Counted from the first letter of the stretch, positions 14,162-64,000 are shown. The stretch is 64,000 nt of DNA from Auanema rhodensis (GCA_964057225.1 OZ059898.1:11160001-11224000); one strand, 5' to 3'. The notes: a model not told the origin generated them from the letters alone. Program-made: numbers and translations.

Positions 14162-17100
14162 ATGAAGTTTGACCTAAGGCTGGTCCTATTTTTGGGGCTG
14201 GTCCAGTGGTCGCTAAGTCATTATGATATTCCACGACCCCAAGTGGATGAAACAGCAGGAAAAGTAAGATAAAAATATTATATAATACTGCTATTTATAA
14301 ATTTTAGAGTTCGTTGACTTTTGTCTTCGATATTACTGGTAGTATGTTCGATGATCTTGTGCAAGTACGTGACGGAGCTCGAAAAATATTCCAAACTGTA
14401 ACAGCACAGCGAGAAAAATTGATTTACAATTACATTATGGTACCTTTCCATGATCCAGGTAAGGTTTTCATGCGTATTTAATAGTTTAGCAGATTTTGTT
14501 GTTGTAAAGCTGTGAAAATTAAAAAAATAAGACGACAATGAGAAGATAAAGGACGCTTTAGTCATAAGATGCTGTTCAACATCTGAAATTGATCAGCTGA
14601 ATGATTAAAACTCACCAGTGAATTCTGAACTTCAGATGTTCTATTTTGTGAAAAATTATCGATTCATAAGAAGGGAGAAATAATAACTTTTAAAAAAATC
14701 CCTGAACTAATAGTTGAAAGGAACTTATTTGAAAAGTAATAAGAGATCTACTATAACTTTTAAGAAAAAAGAAATAGAGAATGTAAGAAAGAAAGAGTAG
14801 GACATGAAAAGATAGAAAATTTACTCACTGAAACAAACGGTTTTCCAGCTATTACAACATCAAACACTTAATCTTCCAGTCAATTAATTAGATCTAGACA
14901 ATGAAACTAGGTGGTACTAAGTGAAAAAAAAATGAGTCATACATGTTTTTTTTTTGAAATTTTTGAAAATTTTTAGTCGATATTCTTTAAACTTTTCTGC
15001 ATTTCAGGCGTTATTTACATTATTTGACATTTTCAGACCTTGGAGAAATTATCAATACTACTGATCAAACCTATTTCTTGCGCCAGTTGAACAAGGTGTA
15101 CGTACATGGTGGTGGAGATTGTCCAGAACAAACTTTAACAGGCAAGTTAATCATTTTATTTTGGGAGCTTTGCTTTTGAACAAAAACAACCAAGAACAAG
15201 CCTGAGGTGTAACGGGTTGAAGATCCAGAAGGAACGTGTCCTAATTCAATGAGGTGACTCAACCTGGAAAGGTCGTAGCCACGGTCCGTTAAGCACATTC
15301 GAGTCTGATGTGGAACACGAATAAATGTTGCGATTCTTTAAACTTGTCTAGTTTCACAATGTTTTTAAATTTTTTTTTTGCATTATTAAAATTTGGGATT
15401 TCGATTGCGATTTGAAGAGGTTTAAACAGCAGAAACCAAGATTAGCTAGTAAGGAAGTATTCAGAATAACAAATCGCTGACGAAACTGATACCGCTGAAA
15501 AGAAATATTCCGGTAAAGAGAGCTCGAGAAGAAGAAAACAAAAAGAAATAGAGAAAAATAGATCATTAAGATTATATGCATAGTTAAATTTGATATAATA
15601 CTATTTAATTGTCGGCTTAATCCTTTTGAAACTGATACCCAGACACTTCTCCTACTGGTAATAAAGCCATCTTCTGAGCTTTGTAAAGTAATTGTCTACA
15701 TTTTCTACAGCAGACAGATAAATGTAATCAACTTCTCTGTTATAGTTTATGTTTCTAGCAAAGCGAAGAACTCATTGATAAAAATGATTAAGGTGAATGA
15801 GTATGTCTGAATGAATCTATGTTACTCAGAATTTTTATTGTTAATGTTGTATGCTGAATAAAGCAAAAAAGGTGGGTGGATATGGCTATACTGTCACAAT
15901 GATCACCTTTGCTGTGTTACCGTATATTTTATCTCTTTTGATTCTGTTCTGAAGATTTCTAAAGAATTTGATTGGCTGTAACGACATTAGAATGACGTCT
16001 AAAGGAAGTTAGTTTCTTTCTCAAAATGTTAGACAGTACGAAGTGATAGATAGTTAGTGAGTATGTGGGTGCTTGTGCAAAAGAGAGAGAGAGAGAGAAA
16101 AGAGAGAGAAAGAGAGAGAATGTGATAAGCCACATAAGTGAATTCAAAAAGATGAAAGAAATGAAAGAGAGTTGAGAGAATGTGGAGGTAGAAGTGGAGA
16201 CGGATCCTGTTCAGATGCTGAGAAACAGCTTAGTATCTGAAGGTTTATTTAGAAGAGGAAACACTACTATAACAAAGAATTATGAGTAAAAGGAAAAGAG
16301 AGAGAGAATAATATAGAAATAAAGATACTTTAAGAGTGCAAGAGATAGAAAAAGGATGAATTGAAGAAGATATTAGATTGAGAGATAAAGAGATGATGAG
16401 AGAATTTAGAAAAGAAGAGTATTGAATATTGGAAATGTTTTGATAACCTGTGAATAGCGGGGCATTGTGTCGTGCTCGTTCAGCTAAACTGCGCAGAGGT
16501 TGTAAAATCGTAACCGGAGTGTTCTACTAGGGTGTCATATCTGCTAACATCTTCTCACATACTCTCATATTTTCTTAAACATTTCAATGGTTTCTAAAGG
16601 GAAAATAAACTGGGGTGATACATGATCAAACGCTGGAAATAATGCAGGAAGTTCGAGAATTCGAACATTAAAACTCATTTAAAAAAATAAACAAAAGAAA
16701 AAGAAGCCAGAGCTATGCTTTGATATATTATTGATTTCAAAGTGATTTAAGAAATCTTGTTCATCAAATATGAGAAATATTCCGAATATTTAACAACAAC
16801 ATCAATAGTTAGAAGTAGAAGTATATGAAATACATCGTATTATTTAGGTATTCTAATGGCTTTGAACATTTCCTTGCCGTCATCGTTCATCTATGTATTC
16901 ACTGACGCTCGATCTAAAGATTATAATAAAGAAGATCAAGTTCTTAATATGATTCAAGAAAAACAAAGTTCGGTAAGTTTTTTTATATTTACATAAAATA
17001 TAAAATATAAATTATAATACTTTAGGTTGTGTTCGTAATGACTGGAGATTGTGGTAATCGTACTCATCCTGGATTTCGCACGTATGAAAAAATCGCTGCT

Positions 17101-50000: not shown

Positions 50001-53000
50001 ACAAAGCTCAACAAATTTAAGATATCTTCATCTTAGAGAAGCTCATGTTGAAGATGCTGGACGGTACAAAAAAGAAAAATTCGAGTATAAAAACTTTAAT
50101 TTTCAGTTATACTTGCATTGCTACGAATAGAGCTGGCGAACAGAGAACAAGCACTCAACTTCATGTTCTGGGTAATTTTTAAGTTTTAATTTATTAAAAA
50201 TTCTTTGATATTTATAAGTAAAGAAAAAAATTGATTTACATTGCTTTCAGTTATTCCAATGATCGAAGATGGTGAAAGAATAATACAAGTTAAAGAAGGA
50301 AATGATATGAGTATTGACTGTAATGCTAATGGAATTCCTGCTCCAACTATCAGTTGGAAAAAAGATGGACAAATTCTTGAAGGTAAAATTATTAATATGA
50401 AAATATGAAACAAAATGGTTTTCATAGGCAAGGAAATCTCAAGACTTGTTGTTCCTGCTGTTGATCTAAGTGATGGTGGAAGATATACATGCATTGCGAA
50501 AAATGAAGCTGGACAAGCTCAAACTGATTTTGCTGTTGATGTTTTCAGCAAACCAAAATTCAAGGAAACTAGTCGTGATATCAAAGTATGTTTTAAGTGT
50601 GTTAATTAAATATCATGCAATTAATCAGGTGATTGATGGAGAACGAGCACGTATTGAATGTAAAGTGGAAGGACATCCAACACCAACTATTACGTAAGCT
50701 TCACAATGTGGATAAAATGTTTTATTTTTCTTAGATGGTTGCGCGGTGGGCGTCCAATTGAAGATATGTCGAATTTGATTTTATCCCCACGTGGAGAAAC
50801 TCTGATGATTCTTAAAGCTCGTCGTGCTGACGCTGGATCTTATTCATGTGTAGCTAAGAACGGAGCAGGAGAATCAGAAGCTGACTTCACGGTAAAATTA
50901 TAGGAAAAATCATCGTTTGCAACAAAATGTGAATTATTTGTTCAGGTTTCTGTCTTTACTGCTCCCCACATTGATGAATCAATCGATCAAAATCCAAGAG
51001 TTGTTCAAGGAAAACCATTAATGTTCACATGTCCAGTGTTAGGAAATCCGTTACCTAAGGCATCATTCAACTTTATTCAATTTTTCATTTTTTTTCCATA
51101 TTCAGGTTGAATGGCGTAAAGATGGACTACCATTGTCTTCAGATTCACGAATTGAAGTGGTTGATGGCAGACATCTTAAGATTAATGAAGCTACCGTATG
51201 TACTTCTATGATTCCTAAACTTACTTCTTTCTAAACGTTTTAACATTTTTTGATTTATAATCATGATAATCCATTTGGATATTTGGTAGATTTTCGTATA
51301 TTTTATATTTAAAGACTGATGACGAAGGTCGTTATACATGTCATGCAACTAACGAAGCAGGCTCATTAGACACACATTTCAAACCAGAAGTCATAGGTTA
51401 GTTAACTATTCATATAATTACCATCTTACATAAATATCTAATATATATTCTTAATATTTAATTTTGAACTTATTCGTTTCTGAATTATCTATTATACCAT
51501 TTATTATAGCTCCACCAAAGTTCCAACGTGAAGGAGAATCTGTTTATGAAGTTATTGAGCATGATTCTATAACATTAGATTGTGCAGTTTCAACAGATCC
51601 AAAACCTGAAATTAATTGGTATCGTGGAGATCAGCCATTATATTTGACAGAAAATATGGTTATTTCACCTGATGGAATGGTAGAAGCAATCATATCTTTG
51701 AGTGAATATACTAAGATTTTCTTTTCAGCAGTTAACTATAAGATCTGCTTCTCTTGGTGACGGTGGTAAATATATGTGTAAAGCAAGCAATGAGGCTGGA
51801 TCATCTGATAATGATTTGATTCTCAAGGTATGTGAAGACATTTAATATCAAAGACATATATTCAACTTATTAAAGGTTTTGATTCCACCAAAGATTGATA
51901 AATCCAATATTATTGGTAATCCATTAGCAATTGTTGAACGTGGAATCATACTTGAATGTCCTGTTTCTGGAATTCCCCAGCCTGTAGTATCTTGGACTAA
52001 AGATGGTGTGCCAATTGATCTTAGTGATAGCCGTATTGTTCTTACCCAGGTATTTTATTTATTTTAAAATTTAATTATATATAGTTATACTTTATAGAAT
52101 AATCAAACATTTGGAATTGAAGGAGTTAAAGTTTCCGATCAAGCTCGCTACACTTGTGTTGCTACAAACAAAGGAGGAACTGTTGAACAAGATTTCAATC
52201 TCGAAGTTTTATGTAAATTTTCGTTGGTTTTTTCAATGAGGTTATCAAAAAAATTTGCAGCTCCTCCTGTCATGGATTACAGTGAACAACAAATGATAAC
52301 TAAGCGAGAAAATGATTCCTTAGTTATCAACTGTCCTGTTCGTCCAAGTACTGATCCAGGATCACCTATCTCTGATGTATCTTGGGTTAAGGATGGACGT
52401 CCCCTTGATCCGGAGACATCTATAACCACCAAAGTATATAAATAAAAAATTTTCATTTTCACACTATTTCTAACTATTTGATTATAGTTCTCAGCTGATG
52501 GGAGAAGACTTTCAATCGATCATTCACAACTTACTGATGCTGGAACATATACATGTGTGGCTTCTAACCGAGCTGGAGAAACGACTATGGACTTCCAAGT
52601 GGAAATTCTCTGTATGAATCTTGCTACCGACAAGTGCCGTGAATTAGAATATGCTCACATAAACAAAAAACGTGCTGATTATAATCGACGACAAACTGAA
52701 CGTGAACTTCAAACGAGATCACGACAGTCGTTGAATCAGCGAGCTTTATCACATACGTCGTCCTCGCCCCTGTCAATAACAACGCAATCTAACTCTAATC
52801 CTAATCCTGATGACGTTCCAACTGCTTCTTCCAGACCATTAAATTCATTACCTCACTTATCAGTGTCTTCCATTTCGCAACATTCCAATTCTTTATCAAA
52901 TTCCTCTTCTCAATCTGATCTTTCGCATATTCCCAATTCCACTATTTTTGATGCTGATACTCAAACCACATATCCAGATGTTCAATTTATATATGAACAA

Positions 53001-56000
53001 TATCGCCGTCGTTATGATGAGGAACGTGCTCGATATGAAGAACATCTGCGTAGACGTCATGAGGAACAGCGACGTCGTGAGCAAGAGCATCAACGACGTC
53101 TTCAACGGCATCGAATGGAAGAAGAGCGTCGCCATGCCTTCTATCAACAACAGATAGAAGAACAACAGCGCCGCCGCCTTGAAGACGAGAAATTAGCTCA
53201 AATGATTCGTCAGAATCGTCGTCTTCAGCAAAATTTACATTTGATGACCAACAAAGAATTGGATACACTTGTTCCATCGGATGTAGACATGATGAAAATA
53301 TCAGAAGATGTTACCTCATCACCTGAATCTCAAGCTCTCGCTCAACGCTGGTTAAAAACTCGTTTTGATGTCGTAGATCTTCGTCCATCAGAGCGAGTTA
53401 AAAAAGTTCGTTCATTGCGTATTCGAGCAGCTCCAGACGTTCGGAAACGTCGACGTCATCATCCTTGTCGTCCTATAAAATGTCGTTTTCGAGCAATTCA
53501 CTTGAGAACTTAGCTTTTTGAAAACTTTTTTTTGAATTTTTTATATATTTTGAGATGAAACTACTTGTAAATAGGAGAACAGAAGTTTTTTTTTAATCAA
53601 AGTTAATGCATTCCATATTTCAGAGCAATACATATCTGGCTTTGTCTTTGAAAATTCATGTTTTTACTATATCATATATGTGTCTTATTAATGTTTTCCA
53701 AGTTTGCTTCTAATTTACAGTGTGTTATGTGTATCTAACTTGTTTTAAAAATTAATAAATGTTTATTTTACTAATCAAAAGCATGTTATATGTTTCTTAC
53801 TCATAACTTCATTTTTTTTTTTGAAAAAAATGTTATTTTCAGTTCGTATTCAAAAAATTTAATTATTCTTCGCTTTATAGCTCCTCCACTCATTGATACA
53901 TCTCGAGCAGAAGCTAAGCCATCTGTTGTCGAGGGGCATCCCGTTCTTCTTAATTGTCCAGTTAGTGGTCATCCTTTCCCATCTCTGAAATGGCTGAAAG
54001 ATGGATCTAACGTTGAAAGTACAATAAAACAATATCTTCAATTTATTAATTCATATTGTTTTAGATAATGATCAAATTCAAATAACTGAAAATGGACAAA
54101 CTCTTGAGATTCTTGATGCTCGTAAAATACACAGTGGTCGATGGGTATGTATTGCTGAAAATGATGCTGGTGTTAAAGAATTAGAAATTGATTTGGATGT
54201 TTGGAGTACGAACAAACAAAGTATTTTATTCATTAAGTGTTTTTAATTTTAGCTGCTCCAACTGTCTCAGTTACATCAGATTCTCCCATCAAGGCAATAG
54301 GTGATACTGTTACTCTTTTCTGTACTGTTACTGGAAATCCAAATCCAAGCATTTCCTGGAATAAGGCAGGGCAACCAATCATTAACAGTCCTGAAGGAGC
54401 TCGTATATCGCTCAAGGTTTAATAAATTTTTGAAAAATGATAAAAGTTATTTTATTATTGCTTCAGGGAACTCGACTCGATATTCCACATTTAACAAAAG
54501 AAGATGTTGGAGATTATACATGTTTTGCTCAGAATGATGCAGGAACAGCTGAAGCTAGTATTCATGTTGATGTTTTGGGTACCTCACAATACATTTCAAT
54601 CAAAATTTTGAATCATTTCAGTTCCTCCTATTATTAGCAGGGATAATGTTGATATGTCACCTCGATTACCTGCAGGCCAAACTCTTACTTTGGTTTGTGA
54701 TGCTAGTGGTAAACCGCCACCAAAGCATGTCTGGTATAATAAACAAACATTTCATAACATGAAAATTGAAATTAAATCATTTTAGGTATGTGAATGATAC
54801 TGAAATTACTCATGATATGGAGGGAATTACATTGGGAACAAATGGAAAATATATTCAAGTCTGTTATTTAAAGTTTAGAACAAAGTTACAGCATTTTCTA
54901 CAGATTAACAATGTTACTCTACAAGATAAGGGAGTATATTCCTGCGTTTCTTCTAATGTAGCTGGAAATGATTCTTTGATTTTCAATGTGGATGTAGTTC
55001 GTAAGTTTTCAATCTTTATAGTTGGATCATTCAAACAATACAGAGGCACCTATAATTTCTAATGGAGGAGCTCAACAAGTTATTGAGGGTGAGCTGGCTA
55101 AAATTGAATGTTTAGCTGAAGGACATCCTGAGCCTCAGGTTTGAGCGAATTTTTGATGCTTATATATCGTTTTCATGAATCTGTAGATATCTTGGCTTCG
55201 CAACGGTATTCGAGTTGAAACCGGAGTTCAAGGGCTTCGTTATACTGCTACCGGAAAAGTTTTAAATGTATTTGAAGCTCGTAGCTCTGATTCTGGTATT
55301 TATGTTTGTGCTGCTACCAATGAAGCTGGAACTGCTCAACAAGCATATACATTAGAAGTTCTTGGTAGATTATTAGACTTGTTAACGAAGAACGATTATA
55401 CTTAAATGTTTATTTTTAGTTTCTCCAAAGATTATTACCGTATCTCCAACTGAATCAAACATTGCTGTTGGCACTTCATTCTCATTGAAATGCGGTGTCC
55501 GCGGATATCCTGAACCACAAATTACTTGGACAGAGAATGAAGAAGTTATAAACAACAAAGATGGATATACTATTGGTAAGATGACGACACTTTTTTTTTA
55601 ATTAATTCAGCAAAAAAAACAATTTTATAACAAAAGTTCACAAAAATTAAATTTTTTTTTGTGATGGTCACAGATTATATAGTTATAATATACACTTATA
55701 CAAAGTTTTTAATTTAAATATTACATGATCAATTCAATGTTTCTCGAAAATATATTTTTCATTATAATTTTTTCAAACGTTTTAATATTTTGGAATGATT
55801 TCTCTCACTATTTTCTTACGAACAAGTCAGAGAACCTTTTTATTAAAAATACTTGACTAGTTATTAGGATTATATTATTTTAGATGATGATGGAACCTTG
55901 CATGTTGATATGGCTCAAGGCAGAGATTTGCACTACAGGTGTATTGCTGAAAATGATGCTGGAAAAACTGATATTGAATATAGCATTAACACAATCAGTA

Positions 56001-59000
56001 AGAATTCTTATGCATTTCCAACGTTTGGAACATGTTTTTAGGCGCTCCTGTTGCAACCGGAGATGGTGAGACAGCTCAAAATGCTACAGAAGGCAATCCT
56101 GCCACAATACGCTGTAACATTGATGGAGACATGCCGCAGATATCTTGGCAGAAGGTTACTACTTTTCAGAATTTTTTTGTTTTGCTGTTATTTCGATAGA
56201 AACTCTAAACAACTGGAATTATTTCAGAGTGGAATGGCTGTTTTGCCATCAACCACTATCGACTTCAGTGAAGATCGTATGGAATTGCTGTTAAAGTCTG
56301 TTCGATTAAGCGATGAAGGTGTTTACATCTGCACAGCCATTAACTCCGCCGGAAATGCAACTCATAAAACAATTCTATATGTTGGAGGTACGAGTTTATC
56401 AGGATTGATTAAAGTGAAAAAATGGTTTGAATTGGCTAATAATCACTTTAATCATTTGAACAATGTAGATCTAAATTATAGAAAGAAAAAAGAGATTGGG
56501 AAAGAAATATGTATGTGTATGTAGTGGGTACGAGGACATGGATGTAGAAAATAAATTTGAATTTAAAAGCTAGAATAGACTATTTACGTCAATTCTATAT
56601 AAGTTGAAGCTTTTGGATTACAACTTTGTAAAATCTGTATTGCACAAAACTTGAAACATTAACAATATCAGATAAGACAATGAGCTTTTTTAACATAAAC
56701 GTTCATGAGGAATTAAAATATTATTGAAATGTTAGTTTCCTTTCGAGACCAAGTATATTCCTGTTAGCTAATCATATTCATAGTACTCATCCATTATTCC
56801 CTGAAATATTTTAATAATAAGAAGTATAACTTAAGTTTTAGCAAGGCAAGCACGTCAACCTAGTTTCTAATCTTGCATATTAAATGAAAAGATTTATCTC
56901 GACACACCTTGTTTGGCAGAAATTTTTTCCGAAAAACTCGCAAAAAATTTTTAAATACTTTGGGATCCATCTGTTCGTCTTCAGAATTCTAAAATAAAAG
57001 AAATTAGTTTTTTGGTATAAAACTATGCTGTTACTTCTGAATTATACAGATCGTTCATTATTTCATCAGGATTGAGTCCTTAAAAAAATAAATTCTTGCA
57101 TAGTTTCAACAAATATATGAGAACTTACGGAAAGCCGATGTCACGTAAAAAACACTAAGTGTTAATAAAACTAGTGAAACTAGAAACGACTTCATCAATC
57201 TCCCTGAAATCTGAGGGCATTTAGTCAACAGTAAACACAAAAGACACAACATCTCAAACGGAATCGTCAAGAAATAAATACGAATATGGGAAAAATCTTT
57301 AGCGAGAGAGAGTGATAATTTGAGAGATAGAGAGAACAGGGGGATGAAAGAGAAGAACTGGGAAATCGAGAGAAATGGAATGGAAGGGATAAGACAATTT
57401 TTGCTAGAGAAGGGTTTGAATTGTGTAGTGAAATGAAATGAAACGATGTAATATGTGATCATGATGAGTTTGAAACGAAGAATAAATATGGAAATATGTC
57501 GGTTCGCAAGCTTTTGATAGAAATATTTTTCAATACAGCTAATTACATGGAAAAAATGTAACAATTGTGAAAATTAAATCGAAAAATGACAATTATATCC
57601 AATTTAAAAAGAATTTTTTTATTGAACTGTAAATTGAATATTAAATATAAATAGAAGAGCAAAATTAGTAAGGTATAGATGACGGAACATAGGGAGAATG
57701 AGATAGGGGAGGAGGAGAATGAAAGGACGTCAGGATAGGATGATGTAACTTGAAAGGCACACATTATGTTTTGGAAAACAATAGTAAAATCTTGAATAAA
57801 ATTTGAAGAAACAAAAATGATACTAGTTTTATATAGTAGAAAAATGATAAAAACGTTGTTCAAATCAGTTTTTTAAATTATATTTTCAGTACCACCCAGA
57901 ATATCTGATGGATCTCCTAAAGTAACATTTAAAAATGGAGAAGCTGCTACATTATGGTAATCTGAAACTGCTTTTAGTAGACATTTTTAATAAATTCACG
58001 GAAAAATAGAACAGAAAATCAAAATAAAATTAGAGAAACACTTTTTTTAAATCATGTTTTTAGGTGTGAAGCTGTCGGTGTGCCTACTCCCAATATAACA
58101 TGGTGGAAAGGTGACACGATGCTCAACAACAGTAAGTTATTTCCAACATTTTTCTCAAATTTGTAAAAAGTTAAAATGCATTCTTACATTGAATGTACTT
58201 ATAAATTTCAATTATTTTATGAAAATTGGTGTGCAGATGGTAATAGAAATTAGTGTTTTTGAACTTAAAGATTTGCTTTCTTCTAATTTACAACGTGCTG
58301 CAAAAAACTTCAAAAAAGTTATATTAGATGCACAATTTGATTCAAATTCGTTTTTCCCAGTCAAAATATAAATAAATGATAATTAATTGTTAAACATAAT
58401 TCAACTATATATTTTAGCTGGTATTGATGATCATAGTAATTCACCAAAAAAATCAGCAATCTTCAATGCTGTGTCAATTGATGATGCTGGAATATATACT
58501 TGTAAAGTGGATAATTGGGCCGGAACAACAGAAAAAGATTTCGATCTGATCGTGCTGAGTAAGTTTGAATATAGCAACATCTGAAGCATTTGAAAGAAGG
58601 TTGGGTCTCGAACATAAAAGAGGATGGCGCATTTGAGTATGAAATCAAAAAGGGAAACACATAACGAGAAGAGATTAAGTGAAAGCGTAGCTTGCTAACT
58701 AACTAACCGAATCGAGATATATTAGAAAACGTTAGATGAAAGTCGAAAACTATTTTTATTCCTATTGGTGTATAGTTTGCATAAATTAATAAAAAATGAC
58801 CTTAAAGTAAAATAACACACATATACTATGATGATATATCATTTGAATATGTGTAGGATGTTCTAGTGAAGCACAAAGTAATTAGTTGTGTATTTGATTG
58901 AGAAGTATCCGAGAATGCAATTGTTTTTCAATTTTTTTCTATTGATAGTTTCGTTGGAGGAAGAAAAAATGAATGATGTGAATTTTTAAGTGGTTGCCAA

Positions 59001-59250: not shown

Positions 59251-62200
59251 TGTGTACACATGGATATTTCCTGAAGTTTTTTTCTGTGTTGATTGAAAAT
59301 AATTTCAAAATTTTAACAATTATAAAAAAATACTAAGACTAATAATGTTAGAAAGAAGAAAACTAAATGAAGATAAGGCAACTAGAAGGCTTCGTTAGAA
59401 CATATTCTTCATTTTGTCCAGGAAAAACAAGCATTTGATCGGTCAAAAGCCTTTAGTAGTAACCGGGTCTCTTTAAAAAATAACCAAACTAATATCCAAA
59501 GGTCAATATTAGATTTCATTTCCGCAGGATATTCGTATATTGCTTACATGTAAAGATACAAGTTTTCAACAAAATTAAAAAATAATTGGTATTATTCTTC
59601 GTCTTCATTTCACTATTTCTTGAAAATACGATGTTTTTTTCTTAAACAGGTTTAACCAATTAATTCCAGCTCAGCCGCAAATATTCCCAGAGCGTGAAAA
59701 TGTGACCACAAATCCACGCCAGGAAGTAATTCTTCGCTGCAATGCTACGGGAAATCCTGAACCAGTTGTTACTTGGATTAAAGCGCCAAATGAGCCAATA
59801 GAAGTTTCACAAAGTAGTTTTCCTCATTATTTCTGCGTGAGAACTTAATTTTCTATGCAGAATATCAATTACTGGGAACATCCTTAGCCATTCGTAATGT
59901 ATTGCCTGAAGATGAAGGATTCTATCACTGCATAGCAAAAAGCGATGCTGGTCAAAAGATAGGATATCGTCATCTTGTTGTTAACAGTAAGCATTAAAGA
60001 TTATCAAGAATGAAAACAAAATTTACTTTAATTTTCTGCAGAAGTCGATCATGAACAGAAAGTGATTTGGATGGATTGTGATGAGAATAATATGCCAATC
60101 AAGAGTTCTTATGTGCAGAGTCGAGGCGATGTTCCTGATGATAAAACTGAGTTTTTACCGTGGGGAGAAATCCCGGTATGTTTATAAAGTTGTACTCAAG
60201 AACATAGCTTGTGGACTTGTCATACACATGCTTGCATACTTTGTGATACATACGATATTTTATATTATATATTAAACAAATAACTTTTTCTAGGACACGT
60301 CATTGGAAGGCACTAATGTCACTATTCGATGTATTCCTGGTCCTCGGCAGATTTCACAACGAAAAGTTTGTTGTTTCCAATTTCGCGAAAGAATTAGGTA
60401 TACATTTAGGTTGGCTTACAAGTTCCTCCAAAGTTTGTGATTACCCCACAGCCTAACAAAGCTTCTCTGGGTTCCCTCGTTGAGCTCACTTGCAGGTTCG
60501 GAATCGTTTGAATAACAGTTACCTAAAATATGTTCCAGTGCTGCGGGCCCGCCAATTCCAACAATATTCTGGACAAAAGATGGGGATTTAGTTCCTGGAA
60601 AAGAACCTGAAAGTCAGCTTAGTCGTCTTGTAATCCACTTGGTGAATGAGACAGCTGCCGGAAAGTATGCATGTCATGCTCGAAATGGTGTCGGAATCGT
60701 TTCCGTAAGAGTGGAAGAAGCAAAATTTGTCTTCATGATCTTCTTCTAGGCTGAAGCTCTTGTCGAAATTGACTTGAATATTGATGCTACGCCCTCACCA
60801 ACAACATCACAAACACGTAAAGTAGCCGTATTGACATGTTATGAACGTGGCGTTCCTTTTACAAGAGGAGTGTCATGGGAGTTCCATTCTTCACCAATTG
60901 ATCGCCGATTACGTGGGCACAATTTTATGAATAACGGAAGCTTAGTTATATATGATAGAACTCCAACGGTACTTTAACTTAATTGAGCAAAACCATTAAT
61001 ATCGTACCTTTCAGCCAGAGGATCTTAAAGGATATTCTTGTAAAGTCCGTAATCGTAGACGTCTCCACTCTGTTGACTTGGTAACTTTTCGTTTTGACAA
61101 TTTCTGAAACAGAAGATATAATTCTAGGTTGAAGTCGAAGAAACAGCTCCTGTTGTTGAAACCAACCCGTCTACCGTACAAGTTCCAACAAGCGGTCAAA
61201 TTTCATTGCAATGTCACTTGTCTTCCAATCCTCTTGTTACCCATGTTGAATGGACTCGAAATGATCAGCTTGTTCATACTGATGAGATCACACATGTTAT
61301 GGTACTGACTTACTTTACAAATAATTCATTATTTTCATATGATTTTCAGCCAAATAACTCCCTAATAATCTCAGAAATAGAAGATTATGACAAGGGAGTT
61401 TATAAATGTGTTGCCAGTAATTCTCTTGGAAAAGCATTTGATAGTGTTGAAGTTGTTATAGATGGTATGTGTTAACGCTGATATAGTCATGTTACTATAC
61501 TCGCTCCAACTCATCGTTTTTCTAAAATTTGTTTCTTTTGTTAGAGCCCTTACTCACTTTTCTGTTTCAAAATAAGTTATTCACATAGTCTTTGGATAGA
61601 AAATAGAATTGCATGTATGTAATAAATTGTTTTAGATGGCAGCACAACTACAATTGGATATATTGATGAAGTAATAGAAAACTCACAAACCTCAACAGGT
61701 AGAATAGAAGAAAAATACGTATTTACTAACTACTGATTTAGATATAGCTTCATCGACATCTACAACAACCTCATCATCAAGCACAACAACGACAACGTCA
61801 ACTACTACAACTACAACTACAACTACAGCACCAAAGACAACGTCTACTACCACGACGACTACCTCCACAACTACTGCTGTTCCAACTACTACAGCAACGC
61901 CCATAACAACAACTTCCATAAGCATTGAACCAACCAATAGTTCTCAGGAATATGAAGAAGAGTATGAAGAAATAGAAGGTAGCGGATATGACGATGTAAG
62001 GATGCCTGAAGTCAGTGTTTCTATTCAACAAGAGAGCATATGTCCAGCTGGATACACAAGTATCAACGGGTTATGTACTGGTACGAACAAAAATTAACAC
62101 ATAAGACTAAACGATTATTCAGGAGCTAATCCAAATGGAACTAACCTTAAAGCCATTCCATACATTACAAATGATAGATGCCCAGAAGGCTTCTTTTTAC

Positions 62201-63356
62201 ATGATACATTATGTGAAGGTATACATGAATCAAGCTTTTATAAGCATGTTCGACCAAACAATCTTCAAAACAAAATTCAGATATTGACGAATGTGCTTTT
62301 GATCGGCCTTGTGATTATCAATGTTTCAATACCGTTGGTTCATATGAATGTAGTTGTCCAGATGGTTACGATTTAGATGAAATTTGCAAAGGTAAATATA
62401 TATAAACATATATATTTTTAGAAACAAACAGTTTTCTCCTTCACTGGCTATATAAAATAAAGTTAAAGCTACGAAAGCTGTATTAGAATAGCTCATTTCA
62501 AACACACAAAAAAACAAAAAAACAATAGCGGAGCCTATCATGTTAAGCTTGAATGCTGATGTTATCCCAGCATTTCCACTGAGGAGCATTAGAATAAAGC
62601 ATTGAGCAGAAGGAAAAAATCTAATTAATCAAATATTCTTTCAAGATATTGACGAGTGTGCGGAAAATCCCTACATTTGTGACGTTAGCGAAGTATGTTT
62701 CAATACTTTTGGAGGGTTTGAATGTATGCCAGATCCATGTCCTCAAAACTATACCGTAGAAGATAAAAGGTTTGTGTACACCATTGCAGAGCATTAAAAG
62801 AAAAATAACTCTGTTTCAATGCCATAAATTTACTTTTTATTTCAGATTATGTGTTCCGGAATGCACAGATTGTGATGACCCACCAATTCAACTTCAAATG
62901 TTGGCTGTACAAGCAGGTCTACCACCAGGTATTTTCAGAGATATCTTGTTGATTCATTATATTTCGAAATTGCTTTTCTATTTCTCTCTTTTTATAAATT
63001 ATAAAATATAATTATATTTTTCTTTATAGGAACACCTCTTGCTCAGTTGACAGCATATGATAAGAATGGAAAGGTTTTAACAGATACCAAATTCTCAATT
63101 GCTACAACATTAGAGGGATTATCTAAAGGTATATTTTAGAATATGAAAAGAAAAAAACTGCTACTTCTCAGGATTGTCACGATCTGGACCATTTACCACA
63201 CGAGCTAGGAATGGACAAGCCACCGTAATCACAAACAAATTGTTGGTAGCGGGATCTAGACATCGTATTCGTGTACGAGCCGAATCAGACGCTCGTCATG
63301 CTCACCGTGAAACACATTTCCTCCTTTTGATTGATGTTGGGCAATTCGATTTTTAA
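14162..63356 (+). CDS. him-4: Hemicentin (HIM-4 orthologue), about 126 coding exons
   Basis: Signal peptide [19 protein letters not shown] (exon 14162-14263). vWA domain [21 protein letters not shown]...[18 protein letters not shown]...[12 protein letters not shown]...[33 protein letters not shown], recognisably hemicentin. About 47 I-set Ig repeats counted by hand (18.8-61.5 kb), SRGDVP linker, Thr-rich linker, DIDEC cbEGF modules (62281, 62646) and fibulin-type end ...[14 protein letters not shown]-stop. AATAAA at 63512-63517. Confidence 0.97.
30030..30052. repeat. (TA)n microsatellite
   Basis: Direct reading. Confidence 0.85.
30431..45920 (-). CDS. Nested antisense gene: tandem ADAM10/17-like Cys-rich domain protein with hydrophobic (GPI-like) C-terminus, about 411 aa
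   Basis: Minus-strand exons 45920-45340, 37799-37668, 35458-35288, 31998-31848, 30631-30431; GT-AG, phases 2, 2, 2, 0, all consistent. 30 Cys downstream of the hydrophobic segment, two CxC...CxLCC units, tail [20 protein letters not shown]-stop. The start codon is the least certain part. Confidence 0.9.
33761..33819. repeat. (AG)n microsatellite
   Basis: About 29 units with one interruption. Confidence 0.95.
42874..42913. repeat. (CAT)n microsatellite
   Basis: About 13 perfect units. Confidence 0.95.
46126..46142 (+). repeat. G17 homopolymer (G-quadruplex capable)
   Basis: 17 consecutive G. Confidence 0.9.
46948..46998. repeat. (CT)n microsatellite
   Basis: Direct reading, one interruption. 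Confidence 0.9.
52611..53513 (+). CDS. In-frame intronic extension of the him-4 Ig36 exon: candidate alternative terminal exon (300 aa)
   Basis: Donor CTC T|gtatga at 52612 normally splices to 53881. Read-through gives 300 open codons to TAG at 53511-53513 with coding-like composition, then a U-rich segment and AATAAA at 53754-53759. Confidence 0.75.
   Translation, partial: CMNLATDKCRELEYAHINKKRADYNRRQTERELQTRSRQSLNQRALSHTSSSPLSITTQSNSNPNPDDVPTASSRPLNSLPHLSVSSISQHSNSLSNSSSQSDLSHIPNSTIFDADTQTTYPDVQFIYEQYRRRYDEERARYEEHLRRRHEEQRRREQEHQRRLQRHRMEEERRHAFYQQQIEEQQRRRLEDEKLAQMIRQNRRLQQNLHLMTNKELDTLVPSDVDMMKISEDVTSSPESQALAQRWLKTRFDVVDLRPSERVKKVRSLRIRAAPDVRKRRRHHPCRPIKCRFRAIHLRT
56768..57195 (-). CDS. 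Nested antisense gene: small secreted peptide precursor (4 exons, 74 aa)
   Basis: Exons 57195-57129, 57078-57035, 56988-56908, 56800-56768; introns 50, 46 and 107 nt, GT-AG, phases 1, 0, 0. ATTTCAG acceptor 8 nt before the ATG. Protein [74 protein letters not shown]. Confidence 0.72.
59214..59247. repeat. (TA)n microsatellite
   Basis: Direct reading. Confidence 0.9.
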
Positions 63357-63772: not shown

Positions 63773-64000
63773 TTAGAGACGAGCTTCGATAAGTTGCTCC
63801 AGAAGTCTAGCATCCTTAGCGAAATTGCGGATTCCTTCAGCTAATTTCTCAGTAGCCATAGCATCCTCATTCATAGCCCAACGGAAATATTTCTCATCAA
63901 CAGTAATAGCAGGAATATCGAGAGAAGCGACTGAAAAAAAAACGCTACTTAACTTGATCGTAAACAAATGCGATACCGTTTTCACTCTTGAGAACATGAG
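63773..64000 (-). CDS. tald-1: Transaldolase, 3' end (partial, runs off window)
   Basis: Last exon 63930-63773 encodes ...[42 protein letters not shown]-stop, the conserved transaldolase C-terminus. 46-nt intron 63976-63931; penultimate exon ends at 63977. Confidence 0.93.

Follow-up and report, generated by a model that had tools for sequence, protein, structure and literature searches.

In the nematode Auanema rhodensis, the hemicentin gene probably has a real but unannotated alternative C-terminus, encoded by sequence that is otherwise removed as an intron. We analysed a stretch of 64,000 nucleotides (nt) of its genome (GCA_964057225.1 OZ059898.1:11160001-11224000; hereafter the window), and coordinates below are window positions on the plus (+) strand unless the minus strand is named. 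A first-pass annotation of this window had pointed to a long open reading frame inside the intron at 52612–53880, which would be reached from the preceding immunoglobulin (Ig) exon if the splice donor at 52612 is skipped. We consider it likely that this stretch is an alternative coding 3′ extension of the hemicentin exon, that is, a composite terminal exon used in place of the C-terminal modules. Two observations carry this reading: an orthologous contig (L002) from another nematode shows the same in-frame extension with ACG where the window has ATG 52614, and one RNA contig (record 10 of run X3) reads from spliced hemicentin sequence across the skipped donor into the frame.

The last shared exon piece (52488–52611) holds the end of approximately the 36th Ig module and stops in phase 1; the joint upstream of it (52433^52488) is present in four RNA runs. 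The plus strand is open over 52557–53513 (318 amino acids), the last shared exon base being 52611 and the GT of the donor occupying 52612–52613. When the donor is skipped, the exon extension (52611–53513) consists of a junction Cys codon (T|GT), 299 sense codons that begin at ATG 52614, and a TAG stop at 53511–53513; the ATG lies inside the donor hexamer GTATGA. Both L002 conservation and RNA contigs fall on this feature. The read-through peptide of about 300 codons is therefore as first claimed, and its length, said to be far beyond chance, is borne out by composition odds and by shuffling. From stop to stop the stretch measures 1,023 nt, more than any other stop-free stretch on the two strands of the window, where the next in length have 780 and 480 nt. 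Three hundred open codons would arise by chance with a probability of about 1e-10 at the composition of the window and 3e-8 at that of the frame itself, and when the intron was shuffled 2,000 times open stretches never exceeded 594 nt. G+C content is 0.42–0.45 in the frame versus 0.24–0.28 in the remaining intron. Within the frame, first codon positions are C-rich and third positions have 25% G+C, which matches real codons in an AT-rich genome. The intron itself is 1,269 nt long. Its acceptor had been placed at 53880; an AG does occupy 53879–53880, but the exon start is 53881. The next canonical exon (53881–54018; joint 54018^54065, side 138) opens the following Ig module with (S)PPLIDTS.

Evidence for translation comes from the orthologous place in a second species. 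A HMMER pass over 1.84 billion representative proteins returned one match, P0001 (194 amino acids, E 1.5e-17), which is called on L002, a 1,020-nt Logan contig of another run that derives from a different nematode with a higher G+C content. L002 is a genomic sequence: its start lies in an intron, after which come exon 1 of the same Ig module, a 43-nt intron corresponding to the upstream intron of the window, and exon 2. The Ig module is orthologous to that of the window, because the 70% protein identity between the two is far above the level between hemicentin repeats. P0001 runs from the end of the same Ig exon (...DFRLEIL) through a Cys and into the tail in a single frame to a stop. The order of parts in the L002 tail is a conserved N-terminal block (N-block), a Thr-run spacer (LPTTTTQAPTTTTT), VYEIYKKRYEIEKARYEEQLKKRHEEHRRRE, LWIKTRFDIV, RVRSLRRHRRRHLRCR and the stop. 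An open frame conserved at the orthologous exon end, as the first-pass annotation had predicted, is thus present, and over 173 aligned codons of the tail the proportion of nonsynonymous differences (pN) is 0.328, against a proportion of synonymous differences (pS) of 0.735, which is saturated. The neighbouring Ig module (98 aligned codons) gives a pN of 0.19 and a pS of 0.732. The first 32 tail codons are the most conserved part, with a pN of 0.16 that lies below the value for Ig36 (0.19). Identity of the tail at the three codon positions is 0.64, 0.72 and 0.38, the other two frames of the alignment contain 11–18 stops, all length differences between the tails are in frame, and the stop is kept in both species. 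Because pN is far below pS at saturated silent sites, the third codon position is the least conserved and length changes stay in frame, the tail is, on this comparison of two sequences, translated sequence under purifying selection in two lineages, whose distance is at least that implied by saturated silent sites.

The same contig bears on how the frame would be entered. ATG 52614 of the window is ACG (Thr) in L002, which has no in-frame ATG in the exon or in the first approximately 105 tail codons, so that the best-conserved block is translatable there only as a continuation of hemicentin. The donor at 52612–52619 (+) reads GTATGAAT in the window and GTACGAAC at the same place in L002: the GT is kept (GTATGA and GTACGA, respectively) but the ATG is not. 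As both the donor GT and the open frame are kept, the splice and the read-through frame are both maintained.

We examined RNA as assembled contigs from four runs of one 2019 study (X1–X4), placed on 50600–56400. The 15 RNA joints listed are all GT..AG introns, so these runs contain spliced RNA, and the main contigs of hemicentin reach lengths of 5.3 and 9.7 kb. In record 6 of X2, exon 52261–52433 ends at record position 708 and exon 54253–54414 starts at 1112; since 708 + 124 + 138 + 141 = 1111, the major form joins 52611^53881. The canonical 52611^53881 splice is the major form. Contigs of low depth cover the tail in all four runs (X1, 52582–53094 and 53192–53471; X2, 52951–53155 and 53170–53472; X3, 52488–52690 and 53256–53445; X4, 52628–52799 and 52868–53044), and a k-mer search of a fifth run of the same study (X15) recovered 33% of the sampled words of the tail. 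In record 10 of X3 (288 nt), 85 nt of 52349–52433 are joined to 52488–52690; the upstream intron is out and the 52612 donor is read through, so RNA that joins the upstream exon across 52611/52612 into the tail, as anticipated, is seen at the contig level. Record 3 of X1 begins exactly 30 nt before the donor (k − 1 in a 31-mer graph) and extends to 53094, and this start point is the signature of an assembly-graph branch at 52611/52612. The spliced upstream exons are found in record 2 of X1, which stops at 52609. The exon whose last base is 52611 has two mutually exclusive fates, a major one in which it is spliced and a minor one in which it is read through.

The splice signals fit such a choice. 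Scored against a matrix derived from the 15 other donors with RNA confirmation, which themselves reach 4.3–8.8, the 52612 donor obtains 2.9 and is the weakest of the 16 confirmed donors. Fourteen of the 15 other confirmed introns measure 43–73 nt, against 1,269 nt here. Composite terminal exons are usually found where a weak donor precedes an unusually long intron, and this pairing suggests one in this gene. The L002 form of the hexamer, GTACGA, is a confirmed donor elsewhere in the window, and matrix scores revealed no convincing in-phase alternative donor inside the frame. Across the 16 RNA-confirmed introns (51679–56228) donors are loose in general, mostly GTA followed by any base, with GTAAG in 3 of the 16, GTCTGT in one and GTT in two; the lengths of the same introns cluster at 43–55 nt, with one of 73 nt and outliers of 308 and 1,269 nt.

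Coverage is confined to the coding part of the intron. No RNA lies over 53473–53880: no 31-mer past 53472 occurs in any of the five runs, the bin 53510–53703 has zero depth in all four placed runs, and the shares of 31-mers found (0.79 in X1 and 0.53 in X2) equal the values predicted from contigs that end by 53472. The covered part is the coding 68% of the intron. The 308-nt intron at 55575–55883, which contains no long open frame, served as a negative control for intron coverage and showed no RNA. DNA contamination and plain retention of the whole intron were rejected, as coverage is confined to the coding part and 55575–55883 is empty. By a rough estimate, uniform coverage would give the coding-only pattern in five runs a few times in a thousand, although T-rich sequence may be under-sampled. 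The remainder of the intron (53514–53880) is T-rich, with a G+C content of about 0.22, and RNA-free, and it carries hexamers resembling polyadenylation signals, GATGAA at 53554, TGTAAA at 53566 and AATAAA at 53754–53759. The first-pass annotation had drawn a U-rich untranslated region (UTR) ending at AATAAA 53754, with RNA 3′ ends expected at about 53775. The hexamer is present, but it stands in the RNA-free stretch, and with no RNA over 53473–53880 both it and the UTR lack support; no 3′-end RNA was found at about 53775, as the five runs hold no RNA 31-mers from 53473 to 53880. Of the proposed isoform made by intronic polyadenylation, what holds is that upstream-spliced RNA reads through the donor; the polyadenylation site, and with it the mechanism of intronic polyadenylation, is putative. 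As a separate observation, contigs of three runs end at 53445, 53471 and 53472, and two ends 1 nt apart exceed what is expected from random low coverage.

These contig ends could mean that the extension is internal to the protein. In that case, a second 5′ splice site late in the frame (for example C|GT, 53469/53470) would be joined to 53881, and full-length hemicentin would gain about 286 residues between two of its Ig modules. In two runs the contigs stop at 53471 and 53472 with nothing covered beyond, protein conservation with L002 also stops at ...TGT CGT, and a 53469–53881 join would keep the frame, though so would any CGT codon in this Arg-rich frame. However, the site GTC|GTCCTATA scores 0.9 on the local donor matrix compared with 4.3–8.8 for real donors, the contigs end there without loose letters, and no such joint is among the 15 listed of 23. 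L002 offers a single good donor-like site towards the end of its frame, TGG|GTAGATAA, but in the wrong phase, and both species have an in-frame stop within 14 codons. On balance we regard an internal insertion as highly unlikely.

It is likewise highly improbable, in our judgement, that the contigs reflect non-productive read-through, in which partly processed or decay-bound hemicentin RNA spans an old open frame and gives no working protein. In its favour, the depth of the tail contigs is low beside that of the main hemicentin contigs, no poly(A) end is seen and protein evidence is lacking. Yet a pN far below pS, a third codon position that is the least conserved, length changes only in frame and a kept stop form the pattern of translated sequence, and coverage restricted to the coding part of the intron in five runs has a roughly estimated chance of a few in a thousand. 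An independent, intronless nested gene from ATG 52614, which the first-pass annotation had offered as its alternative and which would encode a nuclear or cytoplasmic charged protein with an end resembling a nuclear localisation signal, has a very slim chance: although the ATG stands at the very start of the frame and the E/R-rich helix and RKRRR look intracellular, L002 has ACG there and no in-frame ATG until about tail residue 105 while its first 32 codons are the most conserved, the frame begins 2 nt into the intron and leaves no room inside it for a 5′ UTR or promoter of its own, RNA contigs extend into the frame out of the spliced upstream exon, and among the loose ends listed none of leader type lies near 52600–52614, contigs being a poor test of 5′ ends.

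Several points weigh against the alternative hemicentin C-terminus itself. All the RNA comes from one study, in contigs with a depth of about 3–5 whose strand is unknown and some of which could be chimeras. The contigs stop at 53445–53472, 39–66 nt short of the stop codon and without poly(A) letters, which leaves the putative 3′ UTR uncovered, and neither a poly(A) site nor a poly(A)-tailed contig was seen, although contigs cannot show RNA ends. A single orthologue was found, so that conservation rests on one species pair. Finally, strongly charged helices and stretches such as RKRRR are found more typically in nuclear or cytoplasmic proteins than in matrix proteins.

The host gene is hemicentin, with a von Willebrand factor A (vWA) domain and a long uninterrupted array of more than 40 Ig modules by motif count. 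This identification follows from successive vWA profile matches, an array of Ig motifs, a Thr-run linker with an EGF-like Cys pattern, and a terminal exon. Exon pieces at 14314, 15024 and 16856 match the Pfam family VWA_4 (PF25106) in order (profile positions 2–49, 49–83 and 87–121), with E values of 1.5e-14 to 8e-8 that all pass the curated cut-off. Between 18.9 and 61.4 kb, the plus strand holds 37 strict and about 8 loose Ig F-strand motifs (Y.C.A.N..G or D.G.Y.C), and sampled exons from the array match I-set in Pfam. The Ig count is motif-based, and exons inside 29.5–48.7 kb were left out of the exon count. By motif count, approximately 35 modules precede 52612 and approximately 10 follow it; the placement of the intron after Ig36 was therefore about right, but the exact number is not established. 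An EGF-like Cys pattern follows the Thr-rich linker (61708–62097, + strand, identified from sequence), although the two short pieces submitted to Pfam gave no match, and the gene ends near 63356 with the terminal exon at 63174–63356. Within 61708–62097 (+), a run of about 70 Thr/Ser residues, resembling a mucin-like linker, and an acidic Tyr-rich patch, a possible sulfation site, precede the first EGF-like Cys pattern; to our knowledge, C. elegans HIM-4 is not usually drawn with a Thr/Ser linker. Directly downstream lies a transaldolase-like gene on the minus strand (63773–63997 in the window and 246–470 of L003, minus strand in both), which marks the end of the hemicentin locus, and the next 10 kb of the chromosome carry other genes.

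All the motifs that the first-pass annotation had listed for this region, namely the CX7C pair, the Ser/Pro-rich spacer, the E/R/Q/H-rich segment, RKRRR, CX4C and AATAAA at 53754, were found. To describe the tail as a protein, we used AlphaFold 2 (AF2) on the single tail sequence and number its parts by tail residue; confidence is given as the predicted local distance difference test (pLDDT). The N-block (tail 1–46, 52614–52751) carries NLAT(D/E)KCRELEYA, forms the CX7C pair together with the junction Cys, and is predicted to be helical (pLDDT 86–94). It is followed by a spacer (tail 47–120, 52752–52973) that is rich in Ser, Thr, Pro and Asn, predicted to be disordered (pLDDT 38–55), and contains two N-X-S/T sequons. 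The L002 spacer is shorter and consists of a Thr run, differing from that of the window by in-frame length changes. A Thr-run spacer is typical of O-glycosylated secreted linkers and, as judged from sequence, suggests a hemicentin setting better than a nuclear one; canonical hemicentin likewise contains a Thr-run linker, at 61708–62097.

The most extensive part of the tail is a long charged helix (tail 121–219, 52974–53270), predicted to span 99 residues with a pLDDT of 95–97. Its first approximately 60 residues are conserved, and its last approximately 36, which are heptad-like in the window, are missing in L002. The helix consists of 46% D/E/K/R residues (62% in L002) with 20–22 opposite-charge pairs at i/i+4, the window helix having 22; its ends carry hydrophobic stripes, and the conserved start has a Tyr stripe. 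The predicted model thus has the length, the E/R/K share and the i/i+4 charges of a single alpha-helix (SAH). Prediction of a two-copy complex of the helix gave no answer (score 0.00), which counts neither for nor against self-association. A short helix (tail 237–251, 53322–53366) with the sequence W(L/I)KTRFD(V/I)V is predicted at a pLDDT of about 56–64. The polybasic end (tail 252–299, 53367–53510) contains R.VRSLR, RKRR and CRPIKC and is predicted to be disordered (pLDDT <50). An R-X-K/R-R furin-type motif is present as RKRR at 53442–53453 (tail 277–280) and as RHRR at the aligned place in L002, with a pLDDT <50 in both. Conservation of this end with L002 stops at ...CR; the CX4C of the window is not conserved, and L002 has one Cys there. 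The pI of the tail is about 10.3 in both species.

The tail belongs to no known family, and L002 is the sole relative found. Pfam gave only a sub-threshold chance match on the tail (PGP_phosphatase, E 0.13). Protein searches with the 299-residue tail found no homologue, a two-sequence profile (A1) found only P0001, and a profile of the N-block (A2) found no candidates. A scan of metagenome proteins produced 119 pattern matches, none of which was confirmed, and a 63-nt degenerate DNA pattern for KCRELEYA...RADYNRRQ had no matches in metagenomes. A feature search of the ESM Atlas gave no usable match. In the animal's own genome (181 Mb, 112 contigs), no second copy of the tail was found. Of the tail 31-mers, 97–100% also occur in DNA runs that carry two other organism labels (B and C, from studies P3 and P4); these runs represent either the same species otherwise named or worm DNA in host or mixed samples.

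We propose the following model for the alternative C-terminus. In most transcripts, the weak 52612 donor is spliced to 53881, which gives the full protein: the vWA domain, about 47 Ig modules, and then EGF modules with the fibulin-type end. A minority of transcripts would skip the donor, and the Ig exon would run through the Cys codon and 299 further codons to TAG 53511, and the read-through transcript would end inside the intron at approximately 53.47–53.6 kb. This would yield a secreted hemicentin that keeps the vWA domain and approximately the first 36 Ig modules but not the last Ig modules or the EGF/fibulin end. The tail would stand in place of the lost end, beginning with a Cys-bearing helix and a mucin-like spacer and continuing with the long charged helix and the polybasic end. 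Without the EGF/fibulin end, this form would be targeted to the cell surface but would not polymerise. Its basic end and free cysteines could hold this non-polymerising form in a polyanionic matrix or form cross-links, and the charged helix could serve as a rigid spacer. Cleavage at RKRR by a proprotein convertase may remove the last 13–19 residues. We infer the translation, the RNA end and the role of the tail, and what we suggest for its function is a guess; the oligomerisation, glycosaminoglycan binding and furin release put forward in the first-pass annotation are predicted roles.

By analogy, the early-ending isoform would be of a kind known in nematode matrix genes. C. elegans papilin is reportedly made as MIG-6S and MIG-6L, and perlecan (UNC-52) is said to occur in short, medium and long forms. 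In both cases, too, a large modular secreted protein is concerned, and a minority early end, from the same promoter, drops C-terminal modules. Unlike MIG-6 and UNC-52, the early end proposed here adds a conserved 300-residue tail of no known domain, and the gene is hemicentin. Canonical hemicentins (HIM-4; HMCN1 and HMCN2) share the vWA domain and the tandem I-set Ig array, and the major RNA form in the window is spliced through to their C-terminal end, whereas the predicted isoform would lack the last approximately 10 Ig modules and the EGF/fibulin-type end. That end reportedly mediates the self-assembly of hemicentin, and the vWA domain is said to mediate its targeting to the cell surface. 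Literature searches, made in an incomplete collection of papers, for a short or truncated him-4 or hemicentin isoform, or for intronic polyadenylation of the gene, found no such isoform, although the tail isoform may already be annotated somewhere.

Parts of the tail also recall other proteins. In common with ER/K SAH domains (myosin VI/X and caldesmon), the predicted 99-residue helix is 46–62% charged, has opposite charges at i/i+3 and i/i+4, and has few hydrophobic residues in its middle. It differs in being rich in Arg, His and Gln rather than Lys, and in the conserved stripe of Tyr residues at its start (Y..Y...Y......Y...L), a possible interface. The tail helix would also be secreted, in contrast to the known SAH domains, which are intracellular. 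VEGF-A and PDGF have basic C-terminal tails for matrix retention. The heparin-binding C-terminal exons of VEGF-A and the retention motifs of PDGF likewise place an alternative polybasic C-terminal exon on a secreted protein (in the tail, R-X-K/R-R is present in both species), but they have no sequence relationship to the tail.

Tissue linkage, cell invasion and cytokinesis are studied with hemicentin (him-4) as a model matrix protein, and this work assumes one architecture with an assembling C-terminus. If the isoform is real, it could be a non-polymerising competitor at sites that bind the vWA domain or Ig modules, or be anchored through its charge; C-terminal alleles and tags would miss it, and part of the him-4 biology credited to the full-length protein would belong to an unrecognised isoform. 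The locus would also be a clean system for testing how a weak 5′ splice site and early termination are balanced in a matrix gene of a nematode, and the tail would be a possible secreted ER/K-type single helix. In its broadest form, which we put forward tentatively and judge rather less probable than the isoform itself, rhabditid nematodes might make a conserved second hemicentin, with the cell-binding vWA domain and approximately 36 Ig modules, in which an orphan tail made up of a helix able to form disulfides, a mucin spacer, a secreted SAH and a polybasic, convertase-cut end replaces the polymerising end, and which would act as a distinct matrix organiser or as a capping antagonist of hemicentin tracks.

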